A stretch of DNA of 64,000 bases from Heteronotia binoei (lineage: Eukaryota): positions 22,444,001-22,508,000 of the forward strand of contig NC_083224.1 of the NCBI RefSeq assembly GCF_032191835.1. Direction: 5' to 3'. Positions 5,401 through 36,000 of the stretch are shown here, piece by piece. Within the stretch, counting starts at the first letter, position 1, and each line of letters begins with the position of its first letter. The notes under the pieces were generated by a model. The model was given only the letters and a program-made list of their open reading frames with translations, did not search any database and was not told the DNA's origin. The translations under genes and the position numbers were made by a program.

Positions 5401-7944
5401 AAATGCAGACTCAAGAGCAAGGAGTGTCTGACTGGTGGCTTGGCTTCTTGTATGGATGCTGATTGAAACTCTTTCTTCATTCCAGCAGCGGATGTAGAGG
5501 AGACAGCGAGGGAATTCCAGAGGTTCTCCTTGGATATAGTGAAGAATGAAGATGCCAAAGAAAGTTTTGGAGATGGACCTCAGAGGCAGGAGGAAAGCCA
5601 TGCAGGTAAGAGGAAGGATAAGCCCATTCCTTCCCCAAAAGGGGGTCCTTTATAAAACCCCAGTCCATGAAGAAAGGTCAGTCGACAAATGAAGGAAAAA
5701 GGACTCAAGTGTCTCTGATGCAGGAAGCTTAATGTACTTTCAAAGTCTATAGGTATTCTTGTAGACTTCGGTGTACAACAGGAGGAGGTAGGCACTGAAA
5801 TATTTGGAGTGTGGATAAAAAATCCAGTAGCACATCATACCTCCATGTGTAGATTCTAACAGGAGATCTCTCTCTTTATTCCAGCAGGAGATAATCAGAG
5901 GAATGAGGAGGATGAGGAACTGCATCATCACTTGCCAGATGTAGTCAAGAATGAAGGTGTGAGAGGAAACGTCAGGATTCCAAGCAGACCTCAGAGAGTT
6001 AGGTGCAGGATGATGAAAAGGGTTAAATCTATTCCTTGCCAAGGTGGGGATTTTCAAGAAGTAATTCACATGTTGAAGGAAACATACAAGTGCTTGGAGT
6101 GTGGAATGAAATTCTCAGATCCAACCCAATATAATATACATTTTTCAAAGCACAGTATAATGAAGGCATGTAAATGCTTTCGGTGTGGAAAGTACTTCAG
6201 ATACAAATCACAACTCCTTGTGCACCAAAGGATCCACACAGAGGAGAAGCCCTTTGAATGCTCAGAGTGCGGGGAGAGATTCAGTCACCGTAGCAGTCTT
6301 CAACAGCATCTAAGAACCCACACAGGGGAGAAGCCTTTTGAATGCTCAGAGTGTGGGAAGAGCTTCAGTCAGAGTAGCAATCTTAAAATTCATCTAAGAA
6401 CGCACACAGGGGAGAAGCCTTTTCAATGCTCAGAGTGTGGAAGGAGATTCAGTCACAGTGGCAATCTGCAAAGTCATCTACAAACCCACACAGGTGAGAA
6501 GCCTTTTGAATGTTCTGAGTGTGGGAAGAGATTCAGTTGGATTGGCCATCTTCAACATCATCAAAGAACTCACACAGGAGAGAAGCCTTTTGAGTGCTCA
6601 GAGTGTGGGAAAAGATTTACTCACAGTGGCACTCTTCAAAAACATATAAGAACCCACATAGGAGAGAAACCTTTTGAATGCTCAGAGTGTGGGAAGAGAT
6701 TCAGCCACAATGGCCATCTTCAGAGTCATCTAAGAACTCACACAGGGGAGAAGCCTTTTGAGTGCTCAAGGTGTGGGAAGAGATTCAGTCAGAGTAGCAG
6801 TCTTCAAAGTCATCTAAGAACCCACACAGGGGAGAAGCCTTTTGAATGCTCAGAGTGTGGAAAGAAATTCAGTCACAGTGGTCATCTTCAAAGTCATCGA
6901 AGAACCCATACAGGGGAGAAGCCTTTTGAATGCTCAAAGTGTGGGAAGAGATTCAGTGAGAGTAGCAGTCTTTATGGTCATCTACGAACCCACACAGGAG
7001 AGAAGCCTTTTGAATGCTCAGAGTGTGGGAAGAGATTTTGCCGCAGTGGCAGTCTTCAACAACATCAAAGAATTCACACAGGGGAGAAGCCTTTTGAATG
7101 CTCAGAGTGTGGAAAGAAATTCAGTGACAATAGCAGTCTTCAAAGACATCTAAGAACCCACACAGGGGAAAAGCCTTTTGAATGCGCAGAGTGTGGGAAA
7201 AGATTCAGCCGCAGTTGCTATCTTCAACAACATCAAAAAACCCACACAGAGGAGAAGCCTTTTGAATGCTCAGAGTGTGGAAAGAGATTCAGTCAGAACG
7301 GCAATCTTCAAAGTCATCTACAAACCCACACAGGGGAGAAACCTTTTGAATGCTCACACTGTGGGAAGAGATTCAGTCGGAGTGGCAATCTAATACAGCA
7401 TCAAAGAACACTCAAAGGGGAGAAGCCTTTTGAATGCTCAGAGTGTGGGAAGAGATTCTGTCACAGTAGCAGTTTTCAAAGTCATCTAAGAACCCACACA
7501 AGGGAGAAGGCTTTTGAATGCTCAGAATGTGGGAAGAGATTCAGTGACAGTAGTAGTCTTCAATGTCATCTAAGGACCCACACAGGGGAAAAGCCTTTTG
7601 AGTGCTCAGAGTGTGGGAAGAGATTTAGCCGCAGTAGCCACCTTCATCAACATCAGAGAACCCACACAGGGGAGAAGCCTTTTGAATGCTCAGAGTGTGG
7701 GAAGAGATTCAGGGACAGTAGCAGTCTTCAAAAACATCTAAGAACCCATACAGGGGAGAAGCCCTTTCAATGTTCAGTGTGTGGGAAGAGATTCAGTTGG
7801 AGTGGAAATTTTCATAGTCATCTACGAACACACACAGGGGAGAAGCCTTTTGAATGCTCAGAGTGCGGGAAGAGATTCAATCACAGAAGCAGTCTTCAAA
7901 GTCATCTACGAATCCACACAGGGGAGAAGCCCTGCAGCATATGA
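156..7944 (+). CDS. SCAN-KRAB-C2H2 zinc-finger gene, copy 1, 5'-partial (exons 156-270, 1329-1399, 1610-1736, 5489-5605, 5888-7944; SCAN exon lies upstream of the window)
   Basis: Canonical AG/GT borders with compatible phases (0-1, 1-0, 0-1, 1-1, 1-stop), a KRAB-A motif and TGEKP-linked fingers. Confidence 0.88.
590..820 (+). mobile_element. 5S rRNA-derived SINE with BovB/Sauria-like tail (copies near 31182-31412 and 61770-61990)
   Basis: gtcgtcagatcgcagaagctaag..gggagaccacc resembles the 5S internal control region; ggcaatg...cataagtcag...gacttgac tail followed by (AC)n. Confidence 0.75.
1329..1399 (+). CDS. Short linker exon ([24 protein letters not shown])
   Basis: ctctcag|GCAGT...GTCCAG|gtaggg; 71 bp, phase 1 to 0, restores frame into KRAB. 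Confidence 0.78.
1610..1736 (+). CDS. KRAB-A exon ([42 protein letters not shown])
   Basis: 127-bp exon with the typical [17 protein letters not shown]...[11 protein letters not shown] motif; ctttcag / gtaagg borders. Confidence 0.95.
2412..2495. repeat. (AAT)28 microsatellite, the L2 3' tail (copy at 33004-33087)
   Basis: Perfect trinucleotide run. Confidence 0.98.
2415..3154 (-). mobile_element. 5'-truncated L2 LINE with (ATT)28 tail and GGAAT target-site duplication
   Basis: ORF2 C-terminus [30 protein letters not shown]; GGAAT at 2410-2414 and 3155-3159; empty site at 63568-63572. Confidence 0.92.
4329..4913. mobile_element. Non-autonomous hAT/Charlie-type element (copy at 34921-35505)
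   Basis: Ends agggtgttgaac...gtttgacacccctg; flanks gtagagga / gtagagta are 7/8 TSD-like; the interior matches the transposase tail near 20850-20940. Confidence 0.7.
5489..5605 (+). CDS. Acidic linker exon ([40 protein letters not shown])
   Basis: ttccagcag acceptor, GCAG|gtaaga donor, 117 bp, phase 1-1, no stop codon. Confidence 0.72.
5888..7944 (+). CDS. Terminal C2H2 zinc-finger exon A: 22 fingers (one lacking the last His), ending in RTE-derived ...KPCSI*
   Basis: ORF 5932-7944 (its 'M' is a TTG; the frame extends to acceptor ttccagcag|GA at 5888); CxxC...HxxxH-TGEKPF repeats. Confidence 0.96.
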
Positions 7945-8896
7945 CGTCCTGCTTTGCAGAGGCTGCCAAGCTATTCGGCCTAGAAGTTAGTCTGAAGAAG
8001 ACAGAAGTTCTCCACCAGCCTGCACCCCAGGAAGATTATCACCCTCCCTGCATCACTGTGGGTGAATCAGTTCTGAAGACAGTCCAGCAGTTCAGCTACC
8101 TGGGGTGCATCATCTCCTCAGATGCCAAGATCGACAAGGAGATTGACAACAGGCTGGCAAAGGCAAACCGTGCATTTGGCCGACTGCACAAAAGAGTGTG
8201 GAGCAACAAGCATCTGAAAAAAGGCACAAAGATCAATGTTTACAAAGCGGTTGTGATGACAACCCTCATCTATGGCTCCGAATCGTGGGTTTTATACCGT
8301 CATCACCTGCGACTCCTTGAGCGCTTTCATCAGCGCTGCCTTCGCACCATCCTCAACATCCACTGGAGTGACTTTGTGACCAACACTGAAGTCCTCAAGC
8401 GGGCAGAGGTTACCAGCATCGAGGCACTGCTGTTGAAGACGCAGCTGCGCTGGGCAGGGCATATTTCTAGGATGGAAAACCACCGCCTTCCCAAGATTGC
8501 CCTGTATGGCGAACTCTCCACCGGCCATCGAAATAGAGGGGCACCAAAGAAGAGGTACAAGGACTCCTTGAAGAAATCCCTTAGCACCTGTCACATCAAC
8601 CATCACCAGTGGTCTGACCTAGCCTCAGATCGCAAAGCATGGAGGCACACCATCCACCAGGCTGTCTCTTCCTTTGAGAACGCACGCATAGCTGGTCTTG
8701 AGGACAAAAGGAGATTGAGGAAGAATCGCACTGCTACAGGACCAACCCTAAATCAGACTTTTCCCTGCAGCCGCTGTGGCCGGACCTGCCTGTCCCACAT
8801 TGGTCTTGTCAGCCACCAGCGAGCCTGCAGCAAACGTGGACTATTGCACCCTTCTTAAATCTTCGTTCGCGAAGCCAAGCCGAGAGAGAGAGAGAG
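7929..8896 (+). mobile_element. 5'-truncated RTE-clade LINE (RTE-1-like, not BovB), RT C-terminal half, (GA)n tail
   Basis: Uninterrupted ORF to 8858 containing FSYLG, LRWAGHISRM and RLPKIALYGEL, with C-terminal CSRC..SHQRAC; 3' end cttcgttcgcgaagccaagcc(ga)n. Confidence 0.93.
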
Positions 8897-9654
8897 TTTG
8901 GCAGGGCCGGATTAACAATTAGGCAAATGAGGCATTTGCCTATGGGCCCCCATGCCTTTAGGGGCCCTGGGCCAGCTTCTCCCCCCCCCCCAGTTTCCCC
9001 CCCCCGTAGCTAGTTTGCCTCTTTTTCCATCGGCCCCTTCCCCTCAGCTTACCTGCCTCGCCTTTTCCCCATCACTAACCCCCACTTCACCTGCCCCCTC
9101 CCTCGTTGCTTCTCTGATCGTCAGCTTCCCTCTTCACCTGACCCCTCCCCGTTGTTTCTGTTTTTGTCCGTTTGCCCCGCCTCCTCTCCATCTGCCATCC
9201 CCGCCCCATGGGAAACCCATCTCTGGTGTGAGAGAAAACTGCTTCCGTGCTCACCGGGTTTGCAAGGCACTTTTGGCGGGGAGGAAAGGGAAGCCATTGC
9301 AAAACTCCATCTGGGCTCTAGTTGAGTGGTGGGCTGTGAGCACAGGACACTTTCCCCCCAAGCAGAAATCCAGATTGCCTACAGCAAAAAAAAGTGAGAA
9401 AGCAAGCCAGGCAAGCCGGCTCTGTTAGGTTCGCCTGCCCTTCAGCAGCTCCTCAGCATCTAGCAGCGCCAGGCCAGCCAACTCTTTAACTCCTGGGGGG
9501 AGCTGGAGGCTGCTTTTGCTGCAGGCTCAGTCCCATAGCCAGAAATTTCTGAGTGGGGGGGCCCAGGGCATAAAAGTTTGGGTGGGGGGGCCATGGAGGC
9601 TTGGCTGCTTTTTCCAGCAGCCAGCTGCCCGGCCCCAGTTCACTCGCTCTCACG

Positions 9655-10065
9655 CTCTTGAGGGTGGGAAGAGCCTGGGGGGGAGCGTCAGCAGCAAAAA
9701 TGGGGCCACGGGGAGAGTGGGGGAGGCAGGGAAGAGCCCGGGGAGAGTGGCACTGGGAAAAAAGGGGCCGCGGGGAGAGCGGAGGAGGCAGGGAAGAGCC
9801 CAGGGAGAGCAGCAGCAGAAATGGGGCCGCGGGGAAGGCAGGGAAGAGCCCGGGGAGAGCGGCAGTAGGGGAAATGGGGCCACAGGGAGAGTGGAGGAGG
9901 CAGGGGAGAGCGGCAGCGGAGAAAATGGGGCTGCGGGGAGAGTGGGAGAGGCAGGGAAGAGCCCGGAGAGAGTGGCAGCGGCAAAAATGGGGCTGCAGAG
10001 AGACCGGGGGAGGCAAAAAAGGGGTGGGAAGAGCCTGGGGAGAGCGGCGGTGCGAAAATGGGGGA
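9655..10065. repeat. G-rich degenerate minisatellite, ~40-45-bp units (copy at 40247-40657)
   Basis: Recurring ggggagag(c/t)gg..aaaatggggc..gcagggaagagcc; explains the low-complexity ORFs in several frames. Confidence 0.85.
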
Positions 10066-10101
10066 ATGCCTTTTTAGCACCGGTTCCTGCCGGCTGACAC
10101 A

Positions 10102-10304
10102 GGAGCCCCGTGGTACAGAGTGTGTACTGCAGTCCTAAATTCTGCTCACGACCTGAGTTCAATCCCCGGTGGAAGCTGGGTTTTCAGGTAGCCGGCTCAA
10201 GGTTGACTCAGCCTTCCATCCTTCCGAGGTTGGTAAAATGAGTACCCAGCTTGCTGGGGGGAAAGTGTAGATGACTGGGGAAGGCAATGGCAAACCACCC
10301 CATA
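10102..10304 (+). mobile_element. Sauria SINE, 3'-truncated (copy at 40694-40896)
   Basis: tRNA-like head followed by ggttgactcagccttccatccttccgagg..aaaatgagtacccagcttgctgggg..gaaggcaatggcaaaccac. Confidence 0.85.
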
Positions 10305-10949
10305 ACAGAAAGTTTCAGTCTCCTCTGCATGTGAAAAACAAAGAATCACATATTGAGAAGGAAAATAGTTCTGCTGTATTAACCTCATTTCTGCAGGGAG
10401 AAGAATTTTGTGAGTATATTGAAGGGGTGATAGGCAGGGTCATAAACAAAAGACTTCTTCAGTACTGTCAAGCATACAGACTTCAAGATAACCAACGGAT
10501 GATTTTGAAACAAAGTATTGGTTTATTGTAAATCCATTGTGCTCATGGTAAGACCATATTGAAAGTGATACGGTTTAACACAAGATAGCTGGCTTTAAGG
10601 GATACATCAAAGAGACACTAAAGAATGCAAGGAATTCTTGCATATACATGTGAAAAGCTACACTCACAGGCCCGGCTATCACAGGCCCGGGCAGTGACCC
10701 AGCAGGCCCGGCTATCTTTTGTGGTTCCAAACATCCTAGGTCTCAGGCTTAGGCCTGGGAATCGTCCCTGGGAGGTGTTGTCTTCAAAGCTGGTATTTCT
10801 ACATTTGTTACAGTAGGTGCTAACTTGGGAATAGTTTACATAGCTTTGATATGCAACAGTACAGTAAGATAATAAACAATATAGCTTTCTACTGAGAATA
10901 AAATGTATGCTTGACATAGTTTTGCCAAGTCCAATTCAAGAAATATCTG

Positions 10950-11330
10950 TGGACTTTGGGGGTGGAGCCAGGAGACATTGGGGCGGAGCCAGGAACAAGG
11001 GTGTGACAAGCATAATTGAACTCCAAGGGAGTTCTGGCCATCACATTTAAAGGGACCGCACACCTTTTTTAAATGCCTTCCTTAGGAATTAATGAAGGAT
11101 AGGGGCACCTTTTTTGGGGCTCATAGAATTGGACCCCATGGTCCAATCGTTTTGAAACTTGGGGGATACTTTGGGGAGGCTCACTAGATACTATACTGAA
11201 AATTTGGTGCCTCTACCTCAAAAAACAGCTCCCCCAGAGCCCCCGAAACCTCCAGATCAATTCCCCATTATACCCTATGAGAATCAATCTCCGCGTAGGG
11301 AATAACAAAGTGCTCAGCAGGCCCCACCCC
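10950..11330. mobile_element. Probable non-autonomous DNA-transposon-derived repeat of a type I recall from gecko genomes (copy at 41542-41922)
   Basis: ggtccaatc..tttgaaacttggggg..gaaaatttggtgcctctacctcaaaaaacag motif; recognised from memory only, family not assigned. Confidence 0.45.
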
Positions 11331-13149
11331 CATTTCTGGCCACTCTGAAGCGAGGGATTGGCCTCTCTACTCACGAGTTGCTGCCAACTTCTTCAAAGTA
11401 ACACAGACACACCATCGCAAGAGGAAGCTTTTCAATCAGCGACGGAAGCCTCCAGAGGTAGAAACGCACATGGTACTCTGGGGGCGGAGCTCCCCCCCGC
11501 CGCCAGCCAGACTCCACAAGGAGACGCCACCCGGCAGCCGGAGAGGACACAAGGTCTACGAGTCCCAGCATGCACCTCATGAAGGGTGGACTGGAGTGAA
11601 TAGCAGGCTGGTGGTGGGCGGGTCTTTGTGACCCGGAGGAAGGGAGAAGCCTGAAGCCTGTGAGGGAGGCAGGCAGGGAAAGAGACATGGCGCCGTTCCC
11701 CCCCCCTCGCTTCCGGATTTTTGGAGAGCGGGGGAGGAGTCTGCTAATTCGGGGGTCCCCTGGGAGGGCGGGGGGGTTGGGAAGCCTAGCTTGACACTTT
11801 GCCCTCCCACTGGATCCAGGGAGAATGCAATGCCCTAAGGCCCTGCTGAACAACTTGTAGGACAGGGATCACAGTGTGGAAAGAAATGTGTTGTTGTTAT
11901 GTTCTGAGACAACAAACTCAATATGTTTAATCTTCCTGAGCTTCATTTCCTGACTTGCTGTATTGAGACAACCTCAGTTCCAGGGTCAGAACCGGTTCCC
12001 TTGTCGATCTCAGCTCCAAGCCCTCTTGCTAAAGGCCAACCCAGTGACCCAGCAGACCTGGTGGCGGACTGAATCTAAAAATATTGGTTGCCAGGAGACA
12101 TATGCCCCCCCAACTATAAGGCTTAAGGCTATCATTTAATTTTTGTAAGCAATATTTTTTTTAAAAAAAATACATAAGTGGAAAAATGTACAATTAAAAC
12201 TTTTGCAAAATAAATATATATATTTTTAGTAATTAGTGTACATCTATTGTACATATTACTGGCAGTATACGGTAGATACTAAATGTAAATACAGATTCCA
12301 TTTTCTCCAGGGGAACTGATCTCTGCTAGCTGGAGATCAGTTGTAAAAGCGGGCGATCCCCAGGTTCCACCTGGAGGCTGGCAACCCTAAATACAACATA
12401 AATTTTAGTTGCATTACAGTAATAATACTGGAACTTCTAATATATTTTCAAGCTACTAAAAGGTCATTAACATTTTTAACATATTGTCTAATGTTTAAGG
12501 GGGCCCACTTGTCTTCGGGCAAACTGACACAATGGCCAGTCCTCCACTGGTCCTACCATCTTACTGCACTCTCAGCAGCACTAACATCTGGTCCTTTTCA
12601 GGAAAGGTGCTGTTTCAGGCAGAGGCAAGGCTTGTGATTGCCATCTCCATAGGGAACCCAAAATCAGTCTGCAAGTGGTTTTTAGAGGCAAGCTTCTCAG
12701 TTCCCTGATAGCCTTTGGAACCCTTCAAAGAAGCCAATTTAAGTGCAAAACCATCTCTTGGGAAGCCAGTAATCTCAGATACAGTTCTGTGATTAGGTTT
12801 AACATTCTACCTACCTATTCCAAATCTCTATGTGTATATCAATTCCCTTCCCTGCCAGTGTATTTAAATAAAACAAAATTTGTTTAAGTCTCTACCTGTG
12901 CCTATCGTGCCATTTTCTGAGGGAAAATTTTGATGACTGAAGCAAACAGACAAGGCGATTGTTTTAGAGGGAAGATTATGAAAGCGGTTGCTTTGTCACA
13001 CCTGCCATGAGATCTAACAGTAACAGCAGTGCCAAACTGCCTCAATCCAGCTGCCTATGAAGACCATCCTAGAGGGGAGGGGGGAATGCTGAATTTGGTA
13101 CCCCCACCCTGCTGGCACTCTAGGCAACCACCTAGTTTGCCTAGTGGGG

Positions 13150-13310
13150 GAGACTGCCCTGGTGACCCACACAGTATCCGTCTCATGGCCAGGGCAGAAA
13201 CCTGACTGGAATGGGTCCAGTGCCAGTGTGTCCTCCAGAAAGCCCTGAAGTTGTTCCATTGCCGCTCTTTCAATTACTTTACCCAGGAACACTAAGTTTT
13301 AAACTGGGCA
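13150..13310 (-). mobile_element. L2 LINE RT fragment (copy at 43742-43902)
   Basis: FLGKVIERAAMEQLQGFLEDTLALDPFQSGF resembles L2 ORF2 RT. Confidence 0.75.
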
Positions 13311-13756
13311 GTAATGCAATGGATCCAATGATGATTTTTTCAAGAGCAGTGTGGCCGCTGCTTCCTTGAAGTCCTCCAGAAATTCCCATGTTCCCATGGA
13401 CAGGTTGATAATTTCCTTCATAGGGTCCCATATCCTCATTGCTGGTCTTAACCAGCCAACAGAGACACGGGTCAAGCAAGTTCGTGGTCAGTCTAACAGC
13501 AGCCAGGACTCTGTCAACATCAGAAGAGGAGAGCAGGTTGAAAGAACTGAAAACAACTCAAAAACGGCCAAGGAGCCTCCAGTTCCGTCATGATCTTAGG
13601 CCTACTAAGGCCTATAGGTTCCAGAGAAGCCTGCCTAGGAATTACTATAGAAAGCCTACATCTCCCAGGATCCCTTCTGTCCTTCTGATTGGGTGGCAAG
13701 GTTTTGAAAGGAAACTAGCCCAGAGAGGGGTCGGACCTAGGAGGAGAACATAAAAG

Positions 13757-14331
13757 TGTTAACCGGTTTTGGGGCCACGGCCCTGAAACCCAGAACAATT
13801 TAACCAGGCAGAGACTTTTTGCTCAGAAATCCAAAGGTTTATTTATAAAAATCACATTTGCAAATGGAGAGAAAGATCTCAGGCTGAGCTGTCTCTCTGT
13901 GTGTCTTTCTTCGCTCAAGCTGTTGTTTTAAGCATTCCCGACGCAACCCCCCCCCCCCTTCTCTCTCTTCCTGTGACCAAAACAGGCCAGAGACGCAGGA
14001 CTCACAATCTGACTCCTCCCGAGCGCAAAGCAGCAACCCCCCCCCCCTTTTCCCTTATATGAAAAGAATCACATCATCTCTCCTAAGTGAAAATTCCACA
14101 CTAATTGGCTAACTCTAAGTTTCTCTTAAATTGGTGGGGCCCTCCTTTACAATCTGTCTACTAACTAGATAACGCTTCTCGTCCTGGCAAACTCTCCTCT
14201 GCATTCTGAACTTTTTACCTTTCGGTTCCCAAGGCAACTGTTTCTCCCCCTATGGCTCATGATGCAAGATGTTTTTCGTCCCCAGACCAGAGCCAAACTC
14301 CCTATAATATATACAGTGATTATGAGTAACA
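13757..14331 (-). mobile_element. Putative solo LTR, antisense (copy at 44349-44923)
   Basis: TGTTA...TAACA termini; on the minus strand, in order, CCAAT (14134-14130), CCAAT (14108-14104), TATAA (14059-14055), AATAAA (13843-13838). No TSD found. Confidence 0.55.
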
Positions 14332-14789
14332 TACACAATGGCCCTGCATCCAAGGCTTTCTTCTGAGTGAACAGGACTTTTGGCCTGAATTATGTTCAAC
14401 AAAAGGGCCAAGCGCAGACAGGGTGTGTTCTCTCTGGGAAAGGCTGCAGGAATGAAGGCAGCAGGAGTGAGTTTGGTATTAGAGTGGCAACTGTTTAGCT
14501 AAATGCATCAGGGCTTCTGTTTATTTGCACCAACCATTACTGTTTTCATATTCACTACAGCACTAAATCTTTATCAACCACTTATTATTTTTATAGTACT
14601 ACCAATGAACTTCATTTTGCTGTTCTACTGCCTGGTTTCTCACATCTCTTTGGTCACAGTTATGAGGTATTTACTAATAAGGAAAACAAGGATGGCTGGG
14701 TGCTCTGGGCCCTCCCATACAGACCCTTACCAGAGTGGTGGCAGCCAGTAGAAGGCCTTCCTGGGCCCCTGCTGTATCAAAACTGGCAG

Positions 14790-15735
14790 GTAAATCCCAG
14801 GGAAGATACTGGAGCAGATTTTAAAGGGATCAGTCTGCAAGAATCTAAAAGATAACTTAGTGGTCTGGGGAAGTCTCCATGAATTTGTCCCCAACAGGTC
14901 CTACCAGCCCAACCTTATATCCTTCTTTAATCAAGTGACAAGCTTACCGGATCGAGGGGATGCTGTTGATGTTGCTTATCTGGATTTCAGAAAAGTTTTT
15001 GACAGGGTTCCCATGATGCTCTTATGGGTAAACTAGAGGACTGTGGGCTGGACTCTAGGATAGTTAGGTGGATACGGAACTGGTTGGAGAACCATATTCA
15101 AAGAGTAGTTGTCAGTGGCATTTCATCTGAATGGAAGGAGGTATCCAATGGGGTACCACAGGGCTTGGTTCTTTTCAATGTTTTTATCAATGATCTGGAT
15201 GAGCGTGTGGAGGGGCTACTCATTAAATCCACAGATGACACCAAACTGGGAGGAGTAGTAAACACACCAGAAGATAGAGACGGAATTCAATGAGATCTGA
15301 ACATGCTGGAAGAGTGGGCAGATGTGAAGAAGATGCAATTTTAAAAGGATAAGAGCTGAGTTCTATATCTGGGTAACAAAAATTAGCAACACACATATTG
15401 GATGGGGGATATACTTCTGGGTAGCAATGATTACAAATAAGTTTGGGGTACAGGTGGACTGTAAGTTAAATAGGAGCAGTTAGTGTGATGCAGCGACAAA
15501 AAAGGCTAATGCAATCTTGGGGTGTATCAACAAAAGCATAACATCCAAATCGCATGATGTCATAGTCTGCTGTACTGCAGCAGTTCTGGAGGCCTCATTT
15601 CAAAAAGGATGTGGACAAAATGGAGGGAGTGCAGAGGAAAGCAATGAGGATGATCAGGGCCAAGAGATGAATCCCTACAAGGAGAGGCTGAGGGGAATGT
15701 TCAGGTTGGAGAAGATGAGGTTGAGGGGACATGAT
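14790..15735 (+). mobile_element. Degraded CR1 LINE RT fragment (copy at 45382-46327)
   Basis: RWIRNWL..QRVVVSG..SEWKEVSNGVPQG..LFNVFINDLD...DDTKLGG. Confidence 0.9.
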
Positions 15736-15924
15736 CAGAACCAACAACTTCCCATATACGTAGCCTTCTCTGTTGTGGCCCCGACAATAAGGAATGGCCT
15801 GCTGGAAGAAGTCAGGAAGACTCCCACTCTCTTGGCTTTCTGCAAACTGCATAATCTTGGTAAAACAGATGGACATTTATGAAATAATTAAATAATTAGG
15901 ACAGCACAAGGCAACACAGTCCCT

Positions 15925-16008
15925 GGGCCAGAGACCAGTTCTCAGGCAGTGGCCCTGGCTGAAGGTTTCCTCTTGAGTCAGGCAGAGGAGAAGAGGCAGG
16001 CACAGCAG
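15925..16008 (+). pseudogene. SCAN exon 3' stub ([28 protein letters not shown]) with its gtgagg donor
   Basis: Near-identical (2 mismatches seen) to the last 84 bp of the SCAN exon ending at 29379; the rest of SCAN is absent. Confidence 0.9.
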
Positions 16009-16189
16009 GTGAGGGGCTTTTGGTCACTCTGTCCAAGCAATCACCTTACCCTAAAGCTTCCTGCCAGATGTTTCTGTGTGTGTGAGAACTGCCATCAAGT
16101 TACTTCCAACCTTTGGCAACCCAACAAATGTCTTCTTATTAATAGTTATGCTCAAGTTTTGCAAACTAAAGGCCAGCATCTTGGCTCAG

Positions 16190-17163
16190 GCTGAGTTGGC
16201 TAAAGTTGAATCCGACGAAGACGAAGGTTCTCTATCTGAGCCGGGGTGGTCCAAGGGGAGGTGTCTAGCTGCCGGCTCTTGACGGGGTGCCATTGATACC
16301 GGCCCCTAAGGTCAAGAGCTTGGACGTGCTCCTTGAGTCCTCCCTTACAATGGAGGCCCAGGTAGCAGCCACTATTAGATCAGCCTTCTTTCATCTTCTG
16401 TGGGTGCGGTAGTTGGCTCCTTTTCTGGAGCACAATGACTTAGCAATGGTGATCCATGCTATGGTCACCTCAAAAATAGACCACTGTCATGCTCTCTACA
16501 TGGGGCTACCCTTGACATTGACTCAGAAACTACAGCTAGTGCAGAACGCTGTGGCACAGCTATTAATGAGGCTCCCCCAATGGGAGCACATTCAGCCAGT
16601 GCTGAAAGAGCTGCACTGGCTACCTGTTGTGTTCCAAGTCCGTTTCAAGGTGTTGGTATTGACCTTTAAAGCTCTTTATCGTCAGGGACCTGTTTATCTG
16701 CGGGACCCTCTTTCCCCAGAGAGCACTGCATTCAGGGACAAAAAATCTGCTATCCACCCCTGGACCAAAGGAGGCCAGGTTGCATTTGACATGAGCCAGG
16801 GCCTTCTCGGTGGTAGCACCAGAGTTATGGAATGCTCTCTCGGAGACCATAAGGGCCCTGCGGGACCTTCCTACGTTCCGCAGGGCCTGTAAGACTGAAT
16901 TGTTTCGACAGGCCTTCGAAGCTTAAACTAAGAGAGGGCTGCCACCTGACATCAGTTAGAGTATCCGGTGTCCAACCGTCTGAAAAGCAGAACCGCCAAC
17001 ATAGTAATGGTACAGCACTGTGGAATAGTTTAAATTTTAATTGTATTAATGTTTTATGGATTTTATTGACTTACTGTCTTTAAACAAATGTTGTGAGCCG
17101 CCCTGAGTCCACTTGCGAAGAGGGCGGGATAGAAATGTAATGTAAATAAATAAATAAATAAAA
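16190..17163 (+). mobile_element. L2 LINE 3' fragment with (TAAA)n tail (copy at 46782-47755)
   Basis: QKLQLVQNAVAQLL..WEHIQPVLKELHWLPV..RFKVLVLTFKAL. Confidence 0.9.
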
Positions 17164-17403
17164 CAGCCCTTACTTCACATCATTGAAGTCACACAGGTGG
17201 GGAACCATAAAAATGGTAAGAGTCCCAACCAAGTGCCTCTGATGCAGGAAGCTTACTGTACTTTCAAAGTGTATATTATTGTACCGTTCAGTGTACAGTA
17301 GGAGGAAGGCACTGAAATATTTGGAGCGTGGAAGAAAGTTCAGGAGCACATCAGACCTCCTTGTGTGGATTCTAACAAGATCTCTCTCTCTTTATTCCAG
17401 CAG

Positions 17404-19412
17404 GAGATGATCAGAGAAATGAGGAGGATGAGGAACTGGATCATCTATTGCCTGATGAAGTCAAGAAGGAAGATGTGAGAAGAAATGTCAGGATTCAAAG
17501 CAGACTAAAGAGGCAGAAAGTCGGTCACAGGGTGAAGAAGAGGGGAAAATCTGTTCCTTGCCAAGGGGGAGATTTTCAAGAAGAAATTCACATGTCAGGG
17601 AAAACATACAAGTGTTTGGAATGTGGAATGAACTTCTCAGATCAAACCCAGTATAATATACATGTTTCAAAGCACGGTATAATGAAGGCATGTAAATGCG
17701 TTCGGTGTGGAAAATACTTCAGATACAAATCACAACTCCTTGTACACCAAAGGATCCACACAGCAGAGAAACTGTTTGAATGCTCAGAGTGTGGAAAGAA
17801 ATTCAGTTATAGTTTCCTTCTCAAACAGCATCAAAGAACCCACACAGGGGAGAAGCCTTTTGAATGCTCAGAGTGTGGGAAGAGATTCAATCACAGCCAC
17901 AGTCTTCAAACTCATGTGAGAATCCACACAGGAGAGAAGCCTTTTGAATGCTCAGAGTGTGGGAAGAGCTTCCATCACAGACACAGTCTTCAAACTCATG
18001 TGAGAATCCACACAGGAGAGAAGCCTTTTGAATGCTCAGAGTGTGAGAAGAGATTTCATCACAGTAGCAGTCTTCATAGTCATCTAAGAACCCACACAGG
18101 AGAGAAGCCTTTTGAATGCTCAGAGTGTGAGAAGAGATTTCATCACAGTGGCAGTCTTCATAGTCATCTAAGAACCCACACAGGGGAGAAGCCTTTTGAA
18201 TGCTTAGAGTGTGGGAAGAGATTCAGTCAGAGCAGCAATCTTCAAAGTCATCTACGATCCCACAAAGGGGAGAAGCCTTTTGAATGCTCACAATGTGGGA
18301 AGAGATTCAGCCGGAGTGGCAATCTTCAAAGTCATCTGCAAACCCACACAGGGGAGAAGCCTTTTGAATGCTCAGAGTGTGGGAAGAGATTCAGCCACAG
18401 TAGCAATCTTCAACAACATCAGAGAATCCACACAGAGGAGAAACCTTTTGAATGCTCCAAATGTGGGAAGAGATTTAGGAACAGTAGCAGTCTTTCAAAA
18501 CATGTAAGAATCCACACAGGGAAGAAATCTTTTGAATGCTTGGAGTGTGGGAAGAGATTCAGTCAGAGTGGCTATCTTCAACAACATCAGAGAACCCACA
18601 CAAGGGAGAAGCCTTTTGAATGTTCAGAATGTGGGAAGAGATTCAGGGAGAGTAGCAGTCTTATAAAACATCTAAGAACACACAGAGGAGAGAAGCCTTT
18701 TGAATGCTCAGAATGTGGGAAGAGATTTGGTTGGAGTGGCAGTCTTCAAAGTAATCTACGAACCCACACTAGGGAGAAACCATTTGAATGCTCAGAGTGT
18801 GGGAAGAGATTTAGTCACAGTAGCACTCTTCAACAACATCAGAGAACACACACAGGAGAGAAGCCTTTTGAATGCTCAGAATGTGGGAAGAGATTTGGTT
18901 GGAGTGGCAGTCTTCAAAGTCATCTACGAACCCACACTAGGGAGAAACTTTTTGAATGCTCAGAGTGTGGGAAGAGCTTCAGTCAGAGTAGCACTCTTCA
19001 AAGTCATCTACGAACCCACACAGAAGAGAAGCCTTTTGAATGCTCAGAGTGTAGGGAGAGATTCAGTCACAGTGGCTATCTTCAAAAACATCTTAAAATC
19101 CACAGAGGGGAGACTCCTTTGTATGTTCTGCGATTCACTGAGAGTGACAGTCTTCAAAAGCGTCTAAGAACCCATACAAGGGAGAAGAGCTTTGAACTCT
19201 CAGAATGTGTGAAGAAGACTGCAGATTTATACCCCATCCTTCTCTCTGAATCAGAGACTCAGAGTGGCTTACAATCTCCTATATCTTCTCCCCCCACACA
19301 ACACACACCCTGTGAGGTGGGTGGGGCTAAGAGAGCTCCCCCAGAAGCTGCCTTTTCAAGGACAACCTCTGCGAGTGCTATGGCTAACCCAAGGCCATTC
19401 CAGCAGCTGTAA
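17404..19412 (+). CDS. Orphan C2H2 zinc-finger exon B: 18 fingers (one His-to-Asn), one degenerate finger and a SINE-derived tail; no KRAB exon of its own
   Basis: Open 654-aa ORF; acceptor tttattccagcag|GA is homologous to that of exon A and in the same phase. Confidence 0.8.
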
Positions 19413-19485
19413 GTGGAGGAGTCGGGAATCAAACCCAGTTCTCCCAGATAAGAGTCTGCACTCTTAACCACTACACCAAACTGGC
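19211..19485 (-). mobile_element. tRNA-derived SINE (Squam3-like) inserted into finger exon B (copy at 49803-50077)
   Basis: Minus strand begins gccagtttggtgtagtggttaag (A box), has ggtttgattccc (B box) and ends tataaatctgcagtcttcttc. Confidence 0.85.
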
Positions 19486-19490
19486 ACTCA

Positions 19491-19705
19491 CATTCAGTGA
19501 AAGTGGTAATCTTTAGTCAGCTGTGAACCCACACAGTTGGGAAAGCCTTTTGAATGCTCAGAGTGTGGAAACACGTTCTGTCAGAGTGCCCATCTTCAAC
19601 AGCATCAAGGAATCCATAGAGAGTAAAGTTTCAGAATAGAAAGACATTCAATCATTGTGGTAACCTTCAACAACATCTAAGAGCCCACACAAGGAAAAAG
19701 TATGT
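19491..19705 (+). pseudogene. Decayed zinc fingers cut off behind the SINE (copy at 50083-50297)
   Basis: gaaagccttttgaatgctcagagtgtgg motif; about 3 finger remnants with stop codons and frameshifts. Confidence 0.85.
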
Positions 19706-19829
19706 AAGTTCTTAGCCTAGGGGTTTTGAACTAGGTTGTTACAATGATCTGATAGAAATGTCACTTTGTTCGGTCAGGCCATGTGTGCAATACAATGTAA
19801 TGCCATGTACCAGAGATAGACTAGCCCCG

Positions 19830-20125: not shown

Positions 20126-20703
20126 AAAATTTGCCACTGTGTGACACAGAGTGTTGGACTGGTTGGGCCATTGGCCTGATCTAACATGGCTTCTCTTATG
20201 TTCTTCTCTTTTCTCCATTGGCTGACTAGCACATGAAGCAAATTATGTACAAAAGCTCACAATGCCCAGCCATTCCATGTTTTCCCTTCAGTCTTAGGCT
20301 CAAAGCATTGACCATGAAATTTCTGCAATGAATGTCAGTAAATCAAAGAGTAGGTTTGCAACTTATACACTCCTGAACCATGCCTGAACATCATACTCAA
20401 GATAGCTACAGCACAGACATTGTCTCCAGATTCTGATGCAGTCATTCAGAGCAACAGGTGTGAGCTCTCTGCATAAACAAAAATTGAATAAACAAAATAT
20501 TTGAATAAACAAAATATTGCAAGAGTGCTAATCTTTTAAGCATATTTTACGTTTTAATAAAATCTTAGTGTTTGTCTGTGTCCTTCATAAAGTTTATATC
20601 TCTGCTACCTGGCTTTACATTTTATGACATACATGGCCTGGCCCGAAAAGGTCTCATATATGTCAAATCCAGCCCTCATAACAAATTATTTTGACACTTC
20701 TGT
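19830..20703. mobile_element. Inverted copy of the hAT element at 4329-4913, interrupted by a CR1 3' end (19990-20206); copy at 50422-51295
   Basis: Reverse-complement similarity to 4330-4910; CR1 tail ctgccacaggaggtggtgg..(GT)n..ggcttctcttatgttctt. Confidence 0.7.
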
Positions 20704-28810: not shown

Positions 28811-28956
28811 CCTTAGGTGATTCTTCACCAGGGTCAGTGATGTTACTCCATTTTCTGTTCTTCCTGCCCTTTTGATATCTTTCCCGCTCCCTTTTCACAA
28901 CCAGATTAAGAATATATTTCCAGAGTCAGAGGCAACCCAAGAGGAAGGGGAAGGAG

Positions 28957-29379
28957 ATGGAAAAGAAGGACCCTGAAGGCCCTGGGACTGGCAAGGCATC
29001 AAGGAAAGGTTCCCATCCCATTCAAGCAGGGAGTGGTGCTGAATTCTGGGAAAGAGCTGTGCCAGAGATTGTGGTTAAGGATGCTGTAACCACAGTTGTA
29101 CGCAGCCGATGCTTCCGGCAGTTCTGTTACCAGGAGGCTGATGGGCCCCGAGAGGTTTGCAGCCAGCTCCATGGACTTTGTAAGGACTGGCTGGAGCCAG
29201 AGAAGCGCACCAAAAAGGAGATAGTGGACCTGGTGATTCTGGAGCAGTTCCTGGCCATTCTGCCCCAGGAAGTGCAGGGCTGGGTGAGAGGATGCGGGCC
29301 AGAGACCAGTTCCCAGGCAGTGGCCCTGGCTGAAGGTTTCCTCCTGAGTCAGGCAGAGGAGAAGAGGCAGGCACAGCAG
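28957..29379 (+). CDS. SCAN-domain exon (acceptor at 28905, ATG at 28957, donor CAGCAG|gtgagg)
   Basis: [76 protein letters not shown] is a SCAN motif. Confidence 0.95.
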
Positions 29380-32300
29380 GTGAGGAGCTTTCAGTCACTC
29401 CATTCAAGCAATTAACTTTCTTCATCATCAACCTTCAGTTTCTTTAATTCTCCACTGGTCATCATTTTTTCTTCCTGATGTTCAGCTGTAATCTTCCTTT
29501 GACACATTCTGCTTTAGCCTTCATTAGTAATTATTTAAAGTCTTCACTACTTTCTGCCAGTAACACAGTGCCATCTGCACATCTCAGATTGTTAATGTTC
29601 CTTCCACCAATTTTCACTCCACCTTCATCTAAATGTAATCCAGTTTTCCTTATTATACATCCTGCTTATAGACTGAAGAAACAAGAAGATAAAATACATC
29701 TTTGTCTGGCACCCTTCCCAATTGGAAACCATTCTATTTTTTTGTATTCTGTCCTAACAGTGGCTTCTTGCACAGAGTACAGGTTATGCATCAAAATAAT
29801 ATGTTGTAGCACACCTATTTCTTTTCAAACCAACTTTTCTTCATCCCAGTAATTAAAAGCATGGATGTAATCTATGAACCACAACCTGGTTATCTTCTGA
29901 AATTGTCTCCTATGCTCCATTAACCAATGTGAATTTGCAGTATGATCTCAAATGCCTCTTTCTTTTGTGAATCCACGTGGAATATCTGACATTTCTCTTT
30001 CGATATATGACACCAGTCCTTGTTGTAAAATGTTGAGCGTCACTTGACTTGCATGAGGAATTAAGGCAATGGCCCAATAGTTGCTACTATCATTGATGTC
30101 TACATTTTTCAGAATGGGAAAGTAAACTGAAAGTTTCCAATCTGTGGGCCATTGTTTTATCTTCTATCTTTGTTAGCAGATTCTTGTTGAGATTTTGATG
30201 GACTTCTTTTCTGTGGTTTTGATACTGCATCTACTCCTGGTGATTTTTTCCCCCTCCCCATTGTTTGCAATGCACCTTTAATTTCTAAAACTTTCTTTTT
30301 AAAAAAAAGATTTTTCTTGAAAGGAATCTGTTCTCTTTTAATTGCTTAGTAATAATGCCTCAGTGTATCGTTCCTGTCTTTTCTTAGATATTTCTACCCA
30401 GGGCTTTTTTTGTAGCACGACTCCTTTGCATATTAGACCATGCACCTCGGATGTATCCAATCCTCCAAGAGCTTACAGGGCTCTTAGTACAGGGCCTACT
30501 GTAAGCTCCAGGAGGATTGGCTACATCAAGGGTGTGTGGCCTAATATGCAAAGGAGTTCCTGCTACAGAAAAAGCCCGGCTATACCTCTAAATAGTTCAC
30601 TAGACTGGAAAGAAAATCCAACCCTGGTTCTTCCCCAGTGGATATTGCAGCCATGATGGTGAAGTCAGGGATGAAGACTCTGGGTGAGGGTCAGGATCCA
30701 GCCTGTTCCATTCCTTCTCTTATCCCTCTCCCTTGCTGTTGTTTCAGATGTGGGGAGGATCCATGAAGGTGGAAGCAAAGTTCTCTGAGGTAGAAGGAGC
30801 TCCGTCAGAGGAAGGTCGGAGGGCGCAGGCCCAGGAGTTTGCCCAAGATGCCCTGTCAAGTGGTAAGGGGGCCTCCTGACAAAGGGAATTGGGACACTTC
30901 TTGGGAACAGGGTTCAGGAAAAGAGAAAAGGGAAATATTTCTACAGACCACATAGAATGGAGTTTTGGGTAACAGTGCCATGGGATGCCATGATGGTCAC
31001 TCCACTTTAAGGGGAAGTGTAAAGATTCATGGAGGGCAATCCCGTTCTTATTTATATCAGTGGAAATATGCATATCTCACCTTCTTTCCATTGGAAAGAC
31101 TCAAGGCAGCTAAAAAAGAAAAGAAGATAAATCTGGGTGCAGCTATGAGCTAAGGTGAATCAATGGAACCTCCACGTTCCCCTGACCAGCATGGCCCAGA
31201 CTAACCAAGGTCGTCAGATCGCAGAAGCTAAGAATGGTCAGCCCTGATTAGTTTTGGGATTGGGAGACCACCAAAGAAATTCCGGGTTGCTTTGCAGAGG
31301 CAGGCAATGACATACCGCCTCTGAATGTCTCTTGCTTTGAAGAACTGGAGTCCCCATAAGTCAGCTGTGACTTGACAGCACGTTATAAACACACACAGAC
31401 ACACACACACACCCTGTTCTGGCATAGCGAATCTCAGGAAACCCATTGCCAGAGGCCAGCAGTTTGGGCCTCTGTGTCCCAGCTTAAAGACTTTTCAGGG
31501 GCATCTGGGTGGCAACACTCAGAAAGAAGGCACTAGATTAGGGAGCCCAGGCCATGGGGAAGAATGAAAATATGGGGAAGAAGGCCCAGCAAGTGAGAGA
31601 ATGTCACGCTTGGGCTTTTGGTCTGATTTAGCAGGGATACTGAAACCATTTGAGTTCCAGGACTCACAAGACACTTTCAAGTTTCACAGAAGTTTGCAAT
31701 GTATTGGCAGCATTTATTACCTCCCAAGGTTCATGGGTACCTGGTGCTTCTCTTCTGCCTCTCCCACAGTTTACCAATAGTTATTACCAATTTTCTTGAG
31801 TATAAAGAAGACAAGATTTCACAACTCTGGGAATTGGGATGCATAAGCAAGATTAAGAAAAGCAAAGAAAATAGGAATTAGAGGCTAAAATTCTTCCTTC
31901 CCATTTTGGCTCCCTCTCAGGCAGTGAAGAGATGTTATCGAGCCGTTTTCTTTGCAGAGAAGTGGAAACGCCTCCTCGACCTCTGGTCCAGGTAGGGGAG
32001 ATGGATGGGGGATAGTCAGGGCCCTCGCTCCGTTCTTAGGGAAGGTTTTCTTCCTGCTATATGAGGAAGAGAGGCTCTGAACAGCACTGCCTCTACACCT
32101 ACTAAGCTCTACATCCTGCACTCTCACAAACTACTCCGTCAAGAGTGTCAGGTCTCTGCCTGGCATGATCTGTGATGGGGGAATCTGCTTTTTTCTTTCA
32201 GTCTCCATTTTCCTTTGAGGAAGTGGCCGTGTATTTCACCGTGGCAGAGTGGGGCCTGCTGGATCTGGGCCAAAAAGATCTCTACAGGGAAGTCATGCTG

Positions 32301-33002: not shown

Positions 33003-33088
<86 letters not shown>

Positions 33089-36000
33089 GATTTTATTTAT
33101 ATCCCGCCCTCCCCGCCTAGGCGGCTCAGGGCGGCTAACAACATTCCATACGTTAACATAGATAGGCAAAACTTTAAATTTAACAATTAAAAAATTTAAA
33201 CATATAAAAACCAGTTAATTAAGTTAAAACACATAATTTAAATTACATTAAATGTATCTGGCAGCAATAAAACTGTTCTGGCGCTGGTTCTGCCAGTTTA
33301 GATAGTTCCATGGTAATATTATAGATGGCGGTTCTTTTATTCCTAGCAACTTAGCAGTCGATATCAGTATAGGCTTGTCTGAAAAGGGCGGCCTTGCAGG
33401 CCCTGCGGAACTGGTCGAGGTTCCGCAGGGCCCGCACTTCCTCCGGAAGCTGGTTCCACAGTGCAGGAGCCGCAGCTGAAATGCCCGTGCTCTGGTGTTT
33501 TGGAGTTTGACCTCTCTCGACCCAGGGATGGTCATTTTATTTTTACCCACTGACCTCAGTGCCCTCTGGGGTTCATATGGGGAGAGACGGTCCCTTAGGT
33601 AGGCTGGTCCTCGGCCATATAGGGCTTTAAAGGTAATAACCAACACTTTGTACTGGACTCGGTAGGTGATTGGCAGCCAGTGCAGTCCGCGCAACCCCGG
33701 CCGTATGTGCTCCCATTTCGAGAGCCCCAATAGTAGCCTGGCCGACGGAATGAGCAAGGAGTACCCATGGGACCTTTCCTCTTCACTTCTAAGCTGTGCT
33801 TGGTTTGGTAAAATTACCAAGTATGTTGACTGAGGAGAGAGGCCTTCTTGGGCCTGGAATCTGGAGGCTCAGAAGCTCCTTCTGGGGCTGAGCTGATTTG
33901 TGGCTATTGAGTGGCCACGCTAGCTTTAAATACTAGCTATTCCAGGGAATAGGGGGTTTACCTAAGAACAGCCGTGCTAGATGAGGCCAAAGGCACATCA
34001 GCCCTTTCCTTCATTCTTCACATGGATGCCTTCAGGCCTTCCTATGAGTTGGAGATGAGTCTGAGTGGTTTCTTTGGCGCTGTTCTACCTTTCAGGGGTG
34101 TTTGCAGCAAGTAGTCCCACCAGTTAACACTGCAACCCAGGGGGAACTGGCTTAAGTCAAACCACATAACCACCTCTGTTGTCGTGAGGTAGATCACTCC
34201 TCTCCCCAAGAGGATGGAATTGTGTGCTAATGAAGAGATTCGATAACCCAGTTAGAAACAGGTTCTCAGTTGAAGCACAGTTGGTTGATCCATAAAAGGA
34301 TAGAGGAAATACTGTATCAACCTCCCATCTTCTTCAGCGGCAAGTAACCAACTCCTTCCCAAAGGCTAAGAAGTCCTTTCCACCCCCTTGAAGCAGGAAA
34401 GCATCTGTCATGGAAAAACACACAGACACAGAAAAGCCAGGTATACCCGTCCACTCAGCACGCCCCAATGCCTGGGTTTCTCCAAAGCCAGCCAGCACCA
34501 TCTCCCCCGTCCCCAAGGAAGAGGGTTGACTACAATGACACCCCTGTACTGCTCTAAGGGTCTGCCAAACTAGCTTCCCCATGTTCACATTACATCATCC
34601 TGGTCATGCTGAACATGCACATTTGGTGCAAGTTCCCTGCATGTTAACAGATGTTTTGGAAAGACGGAACAGGACAGACTCTTCTGAGGCCTTATCTGGA
34701 CTTTTCAGCACTGCATGTTTCTCTGGGATGGGCTTCCAGAGGCTCTTACTCTACTATAACAAGTTAATGACCCTGAGACCCCATAAGCCAGTTTTCTGGC
34801 TATCTCTTGCTGAAAATAAGAGAGACCTGCTGACTTGGTGCTTCTACAAGAGGCAGAACCACCTGGATGATTCAGAAATCGCTGCACATTAGACAATATG
34901 CCCAGCTAGCAAGTAGAGGAAGGGTGTTGAACTCATTTGTTATGAGAGTCAGATCTGACATAAATGAGACCTTGTCAGGCTGGGCCATGTGTGTCAAAAA
35001 TGTAATGCTAGGTAGTGGAGACATAAACTTTTAAAAGACACAGACAAGCACAATTGAAGAATTTTTTTTAACAAAAAACACCTTTAAATAAAACATGCTT
35101 AAAAGATTAGCACTTCTGCAATATTTTGTTTATTTAACTGTCTCTGATAGCTCACACCTGTTGCTCTGAATTATTGCATCAAAATCTGGAAACAGTGTCT
35201 GTGCTGTAGCAATCTTGAGAATGCTGTTCAGGAGTGTGTATATAAGTCGCTGAAATCTCAGGGTAATGCTTTGTACTTAAGACCCAGGGGAAAACATTGA
35301 ATGGCTGGGCATTGAGAGCTTTTATTGATAAGCCGTTTCATGTGCTGGTCACTTTTGCTCTGTAGCTCTTGTACAATTGAGCAAGCCTGGTAAAACAAAC
35401 TGTGATGCATAGGAAGAAAGAGAGAGAAGCAGACTTGTTTGTGGGCCTGATAGGAGCCTTCTGGAGGCCTGATTTAGCCCCCGGGCTGCACGTTTGACAC
35501 CCCTGGTAGAGTATGGCTCAGAAATCGCAAGAAAATGCTTTCGAGCTTGAGAAAGGTGGCCCTACACTGCAGGGCTGGTTTTCTCATTGGTCATCACTTG
35601 CCCCCTTAACAAATGACATCTCTTCCAAAAACCATGGGGTCCCCCTCTGAAGTGTGGGGTTCACTTACTTAGATCATGGTTAGATCCACAAAAAACATGT
35701 ATCTGGGAAGGCTGAAACCCAGCTCCTCCTGGCTCTCTTCACAAGTAGAAAGAAACTCTCAGTGTAGTCACAGTACTGCATATCATGATAACTGCTTGTA
35801 TTTAATTCTGTAGAGCAGAGAGTCACAAGAGCTGCACAGCAAGTCAACTGGGAACAGTGAGGGAATCATTCTTTGCCAGTCTCTCCCTTAAAGTATGTTT
35901 GAGGAGAGGGGGGATGGGCAGAATGTAAAAACAGCTCTATGGCAAGGTGTGACCAGTGGCTCAGTTTGGTAGGAAGGAAGATCATATAAAAGAAATGCAG

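Follow-up and report, generated by a model that had tools for sequence, protein, structure and literature searches.

The window analysed here comprises 64,000 nucleotides of the genome of the gecko Heteronotia binoei (NC_083224.1, positions 22,444,001 to 22,508,000 of the forward strand) and is occupied by a tandem array with a period of 30,592 bp. The array contains a complete gene for a SCAN-KRAB C2H2 zinc-finger protein, which ends in a large zinc-finger exon (exon A), and a second, headless zinc-finger exon (exon B), which follows the stop codon of exon A at a distance of 9.5 kb on the same strand. The best protein and locus matches to the window are from H. binoei and have identities of 80–90%, and none of them is identical. 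Exon B may well be the recently orphaned last exon of a once-complete tandem SCAN-KRAB paralogue, which has not yet decayed.

The complete gene crosses the boundary between repeat units, with the SCAN exon in one unit and the later exons in the next. All exons and remnants described here lie on the forward strand. The head exons were located by tblastn with the closest annotated head, that of the H. binoei protein P0003, to which they are 85–88% identical. The SCAN exon E1 (28957–29379, 423 nt) extends from the ATG to a phase-0 donor, has AG/GT boundaries, is 85% identical to the P0003 head, and contains a SCAN domain (Pfam PF02023, E=1.3e-35, at 28876–29412). Exon E2 (30748–30862, 115 nt; twin in the first unit at 156–270) was found with P0003 residues 141–180, and exon E3 (1329–1399, 71 nt) was also found with P0003; both have AG/GT boundaries. 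The KRAB-A exon (1610–1736, 127 nt; Pfam PF01352, E=2e-20), likewise bounded by AG/GT, is entered in phase 0 and left in phase 1. It is followed by an acidic linker exon (5489–5605, 117 nt), which is matched by tblastn with P0003 and a second annotated H. binoei protein, P0017, at 80–83%. The linker exon ends with ...GCCATGCAG at the donor 5605|GT, the donor that has been proposed to splice to exon B. Summing the exon lengths places this donor in phase 1, matching the acceptors of both finger exons. The sum leaves out a doubtful segment at 2261–2367, a possible extra exon homologous to P0003 residues 246–278; with the boundaries found it is 107 nt long and would break the frame, and it is probably skipped or dead in the complete gene. 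The SCAN exon, the KRAB-A exon, and the single large phase-1 finger exon are all in frame, which is the organization of a SCAN-KRAB C2H2 gene.

Exon A (5888–7944) starts at a phase-1 acceptor and encodes 22 fingers, of which 21 are canonical and one has a histidine replaced by leucine. Its frame is ended by the insertion of a long interspersed nuclear element (LINE) at approximately 7936, and the stop codon at 7942–7944, which follows the residues CSI, arises at the junction. The LINE fragment that truncates the array (7936–8855) has kept an open frame of approximately 307 codons. Neither tblastn nor similarity searches detected finger or 3′ untranslated region (UTR) homology after exon A, where the 3′UTR of the family is missing. 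The first AATAAA or ATTAAA after exon A is at 10871, 2.9 kb further on.

Exon B (17404–19412) consists of a 62-codon pre-finger linker, 18 fingers, and a tail that is decayed from approximately 19100 and ends at a stop codon inside a short interspersed nuclear element (SINE). An open frame extends from 17376 as far as the stop codon at 19410–19412 and contains 669 codons counted from 17406; the list of open reading frames gives a form of 654 amino acids with a TTG start. Seventeen of the fingers are canonical C2H2 fingers, and the remaining one has the first histidine replaced by asparagine. The A and B arrays are collinear throughout, except that B lacks one finger, and the contact positions −1, 2, 3, and 6 differ between them in 16 of the 18 aligned fingers. 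The first-pass annotation had described exon B as an open frame of 654 amino acids with 18 fingers and contact residues unlike those of A, and its coordinates hold. The anatomy that it gave for the locus is confirmed with two corrections, which concern the fingers after the SINE and the presence of exon B in every unit of the array.

The acceptor of exon B (...ctttattccagcag|GA at 17403|17404) is in phase 1, as is that of exon A. The last introns of A and B (5703–5887 and 17223–17403) match at 155 of 176 aligned bases with 14 gapped positions, the last 20 intron bases before the two acceptors are identical, and the polypyrimidine tracts are nearly so. The homology of the two introns and acceptors, and their common phase, had been recognized in the first-pass annotation, which proposed that B is a true alternative last exon. 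Transcription from the promoter of the SCAN-KRAB gene would continue beyond exon A and the donor at 5605 would be joined to the acceptor at 17404, yielding another SCAN-KRAB repressor whose 18 fingers are different, and selection would keep B open. The agreement in phase, the near-identical acceptors and polypyrimidine tracts, the position of B downstream of A on the same strand, and the divergent contact residues are consistent with such splicing. So are the 3′ ends, because exon A has lost the 3′ end of the family to the LINE, and B keeps the family 3′ flank, which is homologous to that of the gene at the paralogous locus L001 and contains three AATAAA signals (20487, 20504, and 20556; 20487–20561) approximately 1.1 kb after the stop codon of B. 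However, the acceptor of A is as strong as that of B and is transcribed 11.5 kb earlier, and should therefore usually win. We regard the use of B as an alternative last exon as possible but rather unlikely.

The proposed splicing follows the logic of the Drosophila BTB zinc-finger genes fruitless and lola, in which a common N-terminal part is spliced to alternative finger exons of differing specificity (PMC4197022). As would be required for an arrangement of this type, both tails of the gecko locus have an intact acceptor whose phase is compatible with the head (phase 1 at the 5605 donor and at the two acceptors), and each tail has its own stop codon and a predicted polyadenylation signal, from 20487 for B and at 10871 for A. 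Nevertheless, the isoforms of fruitless and lola were shown by experiment and their tails contain one or two fingers in dedicated exons, whereas the junction at the gecko locus is a proposed one, its tails contain 18–22 fingers, and B is plainly the remainder of an entire duplicated gene.

The head that belonged to exon B is almost completely missing. A tblastn search with P0003 over 8–17.4 kb matched only an 84-bp SCAN stub (15925–16008) and detected no KRAB or linker exon, as had been reported in the first-pass annotation. The stub has a phase-0 CAG|GT donor, so splicing from the stub to B would be out of frame, and the sequence upstream of it is purine-rich and has no convincing acceptor. 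It is identical to 29296–29379 in 82 of 84 positions, and both differences are synonymous. The stub is followed by a remnant of the intron that succeeds the SCAN exon (16009–16175), which matches the SCAN introns of L002, a second paralogous H. binoei locus that was fetched together with L001. Within the unit, the old duplication has left no further trace except the stub and approximately 40 bp of this intron (15925–16047 versus 29296–29418). The stub with its flanking intron proves that exon B formerly possessed a head. The exons required for the original product have been lost, as is expected of an orphaned exon, since there is no KRAB or linker exon and the SCAN exon has been cut to 84 bp.

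The space around the stub is filled by transposon fragments. A CR1-like LINE fragment (14300–15924), which has a weak match to Pfam RVT_1, reverse transcriptase pieces in three frames, and copies in L002, abuts the stub; its ends are approximate, and the CR1 tail looks to stop near 15900, approximately 26 bases before the stub. On the other side, a 5′-truncated LINE fragment with an (AAAT)n tail (16176–17165) connects the SCAN intron with the final 245 nt of the finger intron. This fragment of approximately 1 kb stands where approximately 6.9 kb with five head exons would be expected. The remnant of the last intron (17158–17403), which includes the polypyrimidine tract and the acceptor, has a divergence (K) of 0.12–0.20 from the introns of A and L002, in comparison with a synonymous divergence (dS) of approximately 0.4.

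Selection on exon B was assessed using the collinear finger exon of the annotated L002 gene (O) as a third taxon, and Nei-Gojobori distances were resolved into the A, B, and O branches. The ratio of non-synonymous to synonymous divergence (dN/dS) in the framework codons of fingers 1–18 is 0.20 for A, 0.19 for B, and 0.40 for O; dS can be inflated by exchange between fingers that leaves the framework residues unchanged, and the absolute ratios may therefore be somewhat low, whereas the comparison among the branches is unaffected. The corresponding values for the contact residues are 0.89, 1.22, and 0.92. Unique framework amino-acid changes in fingers 1–18 number 18 in A, 25 in B, and 28 in O, and the framework dN/dS of B rises to 0.27 once the decayed tail is included. 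There are no stop codons or frameshifts in 566 codons of B, and its branch carries no sign of relaxed constraint. These substitution patterns indicate that B has been a selected coding exon for nearly all its history, without detectable relaxation in fingers 1–18.

Conservation extends into the intron. The 200 nt at the 3′ end of the finger intron are conserved in four paralogues (window 5688–5887 and 17204–17403; L002 19438–19637 and 37834–38033), with K = 0.12–0.26 in comparison with dS of approximately 0.4, well beyond the polypyrimidine tract. The last 200 intron nucleotides of B are closer to those of O than are those of A, and they are as well conserved as in the intact paralogues. The lack of detectable relaxation in the fingers and in the pre-finger linker would fit the use of B as an alternative last exon; however, all of the constraint may have acted while B still possessed a head. 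The constraint, acceptor, phase, and 3′ flank of B are equally expected if the head was present until recently, and so they do not decide on the mechanism.

The pre-finger linker bears on another explanation, namely that B is transcribed in some other way, either as a finger-only protein from a transposon-derived or other promoter, or as the non-coding 3′ part of read-through transcripts of A. An in-frame methionine, calculated to be codon 63 in the exon, precedes finger 1, transposon fragments are situated immediately upstream of B, exon A has no polyadenylation signal nearby, and finger-only genes are the most numerous class among the zinc-finger gene models of lizards (Table 1 in PMC3971581). 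However, the 62 codons before this first internal methionine have a dN/dS of 0.20 on the B branch and only four unique amino-acid changes, in comparison with seven in A and ten in O, which would be unexpected for a 5′UTR. Furthermore, a search for promoters over the whole unit detected no CpG island, including in the GC-rich stretch around 9696–10002. We consider transcription of this kind improbable, and all the remaining explanations of B together have only a slight chance of being correct.

The recency of the head loss can be bounded from the state of the coding frame. If the baseline constraint of B is that of A, the framework dN of B allows a terminal neutral phase of at most approximately 1%, or approximately 3% with a lower baseline, by arithmetic. 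In the B frame, 3.95% of substitutions create stop codons, and frameshifting insertions and deletions occur at 0.07–0.15 per substitution in neutral alignments. The probability that the 1.7-kb frame remains intact is 0.2–0.4 at 0.5% neutral divergence, 0.04–0.15 at 1%, and below 0.03 at 2%. Taken together, these estimates suggest that any neutral phase of B has lasted for at most about 1–1.5% divergence.

The transposon fragments that replaced the head of B look young. The coding frame of the LINE fragment at 16176–17165 has one stop codon in approximately 650 nt, three or more breaks interrupt the CR1-like fragment within approximately 1.1 kb, and the LINE that cuts exon A has no disabling event in 920 nt. 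When pooled, these four events in 2670 nt predict 2.5 events in the 1700 nt of B, where none is observed; the difference is not significant (P of approximately 0.08). No close copies of the transposon fragments suitable for dating were found in the window or in the L001 and L002 sequences. The stub and the transposon copies being uninformative, the dating of the head loss depends on the counts of disabling events and is imprecise.

Two other clocks were rejected. The 82/84 identity of the SCAN stub was discarded as a date since this 84-nt segment is 96–98% identical among all functional paralogues, and the divergence of the last intron was discarded as a neutral clock because the last 200 nt are conserved in all paralogues (K = 0.12–0.26). 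Between A and B, the last-intron K is 0.13 in a pairwise alignment and 0.20 in a four-way alignment. The flank of the SCAN intron has K = 0.27–0.39, in line with dS of approximately 0.4.

The conservation of the last 84 nt of the SCAN exon is an observation in its own right. Six paralogous copies (window 29296–29379 and 15925–16008, and those in L001 and L002) are 96–98% identical in nucleotide sequence, the adjoining intron differs by 8–39% among most copies, and synonymous sites elsewhere have dS of approximately 0.4. This pattern suggests a splicing element or gene conversion.

The history that we tentatively favour, although we would not give it quite an even chance, begins with an old duplication that would have produced two whole genes, now separated by a synonymous divergence of approximately 0.4. 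Both genes would have evolved as working repressors while the specificities of their fingers diverged. Presumably much later, transposon-associated rearrangements would have removed the head of the second gene: the CR1-like fragment came to abut a SCAN exon cut to 84 bp, and the 1-kb LINE fragment replaced approximately 6.9 kb that would have contained two small head exons, the KRAB-A exon, the possible homologue of 2261–2367, and the linker exon. The 30.6-kb block would then have been amplified. The open frame of exon B would reflect the short time available for decay (no more than about 1–1.5% neutral divergence), and the exon would have no present function. The constraint on the B branch, which is like that of intact relatives, fits a gene that worked with its head until recently. 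Recent orphaning is also supported by the divergence of approximately 1.5% between neighbouring units, by the decay that has already affected the C-terminal 1.5 fingers of B, and by the finding that no annotated protein contains B.

Orphaned exons and partial pseudogenes in zinc-finger clusters arise, as B appears to have done, by tandem duplication followed by the loss of part of a gene through deletion and transposon insertion. Unlike the usual pseudogene, B has a 1.7-kb frame without a disabling change or measurable relaxation, which demands a very recent loss of the head. Several points weigh against the orphaned-exon history. An intact frame of this length is the less probable outcome under neutrality unless the head was lost less than approximately 1% divergence ago, whereas the head was hit by at least two events (the 5′ truncation of the SCAN exon and the deletion of the middle exons), which suggests that some time has elapsed. 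The acceptor-proximal intron of B is better conserved than that of A, and fingers 1–18 of B have no excess of framework changes in comparison with A and the paralogue. Finally, in the 2.9 kb without a canonical polyadenylation signal after exon A, transcription may well run on towards B. Since B retains the capacity for splicing, matches the phase of the upstream linker exon, and has its own polyadenylation signals, some read-through splicing is mechanistically possible even for an orphaned exon.

Splicing between neighbouring zinc-finger genes has precedents. RefSeq lists ZNF559-ZNF177 and ZNF816-ZNF321P as read-through loci. A conjoined transcript of the human KRAB zinc-finger genes ZNF600 and ZNF611 has also been detected in cell lines and normal blood cells; in such transcripts, the upstream exons of one of two same-strand tandem genes are spliced to those of the downstream gene (PMC8265495). 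The downstream partner in the human cases is generally a whole gene with a promoter of its own, whereas B is headless and could become part of a SCAN-KRAB protein only by read-through. In H. binoei, the annotated P0017 (L002:10001–33334) is chimeric, with an internal donor in the finger exon at approximately 21313 joined to the SCAN exon of the next gene (31228–31419). The chimera reflects either read-through splicing or an annotation artefact. As a finger exon is spliced into the SCAN exon of the next gene in this model, inter-gene splicing has at least been modelled in the SCAN-KRAB family, which lends some support to the alternative-last-exon explanation.

Searches for transcripts or proteins that contain B were negative. 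A word search of indexed sequencing runs with 17404–19214 found at most 0.14 of the sampled words shared, in several organisms. A search of the protein collection with B returned nothing above 68% identity, and neither the A gene nor B was present in it (368–1170 amino acids). No short protein fragments over the proposed 5605/17404 junction were found using the first 130 residues of B as the query, and a search with P0003 residues 1–370 did not reveal another cluster that shares this head. In lizards, SCAN and SCAN-KRAB zinc-finger gene models number in the hundreds and expanded within the lineage (PMC3971581). An all-against-all comparison of the heads of 215 fetched gecko and other proteins identified no two proteins that share a head (97% identity or more) but differ in their tails, which counts against the use of B as an alternative last exon. 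Neither of the two paralogous loci examined, L001 and L002, has a headless second finger exon, so the layout that the first-pass annotation would look for at sister clusters does not recur there. An open reading frame at 42 kb in L002 was rejected as a candidate for such an exon, as it contains no fingers and looks by eye like LINE ORF1.

If the splice from 5605 to 17404 were real, one promoter and head would deliver two arrays of 18–22 fingers, the second salvaged from a beheaded paralogue after the first had lost its 3′ end to a LINE, and the unit would have been amplified in tandem; we hold this scenario to be doubtful. KRAB and SCAN clusters could then gain new target specificities while the promoter and effector domain stay the same, with the remains of a broken duplicate reused as an alternative DNA-binding cassette, a vertebrate parallel to fruitless and lola. 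If the splice is absent, the locus provides a clean, datable snapshot of a finger gene between the loss of its head and its decay, and a warning that an open 2-kb finger frame alone is no evidence of present function.

The end of exon B was shaped by the SINE at 19205–19487 (no strand assigned), which inserted into finger 20 and supplies the last approximately 65 codons and the stop codon. Full-length copies of the SINE in the window, L001, and L002 match it at 84–89% identity, and ARAGORN detected no intact tRNA in it. Just before the SINE, from approximately 19100, there are approximately 1.5 decayed but in-frame fingers. The remnants after the SINE (19488–19733) comprise the rest of finger 20, one intact finger, an ancestrally degenerate finger, and 3′UTR common with the paralogue. 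Approximately 130 nt after the SINE were coding before its arrival; the first 50 nt contain one stop codon and at least two frameshifts, and the next 84 nt form a perfect finger. The remnants align best around and after the natural stop codon of O and then run into the common 3′UTR. The distal finger has the same 9-nt deletion and TAG as the region after the stop codon in L002, which identifies it as ancestral 3′UTR. The stops and frameshifts that had been set against a clean upstream region are present, but part of the downstream sequence is ancestral 3′UTR, 84 nt are intact, and decay is also found before the SINE. The comparison with L002 indicates that the end of B is a locally relaxed C-terminus rather than a clean contrast between sequence before and after the SINE.

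The repeat units offer no independent support. Positions 1–29460 and 30593–60052 are identical base for base, with no mismatches over 29,460 bp at an offset of exactly one period, and exon B has an exact twin at 47996–50004. From 60053 on, the next copy is approximately 1.5% diverged and has several insertions and deletions; 2.8 kb of a third unit are visible. An unequal crossover in the very recent past and a duplication introduced during assembly would both account for the exact 29.46-kb copy. The statement that the cassette is repeated in every 30.6-kb unit thus holds for two units, but these are exact copies and the third is visible for 2.8 kb only; the two copies of exon B amount to one observation and provide no independent support for each other. 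The layout might also be in part an assembly artefact, in which case the 29.46-kb duplicate would be a false tandem copy and one cassette per unit would overstate a single locus. The complete identity over the offset of one period and the divergence of the next unit point in this direction; however, a recent unequal sister-chromatid exchange yields exactly such a pattern. We consider the artefact quite unlikely, a judgement separate from the weighing of the explanations of exon B, and the anatomy of a single unit would be unchanged by it.

Two repeats within the units are of minor interest. An (AAT)n microsatellite of approximately 134 nt (33011–33144) is present in units 1 and 2 and is absent or much shorter in unit 3 (63585), and the sequence after it aligns poorly between units. 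A G-rich tandem repeat with periods of approximately 30, 51, and 62 nt (9696–10002) is part of the GC-rich stretch between exons A and B, and this region contains long open frames on both strands.

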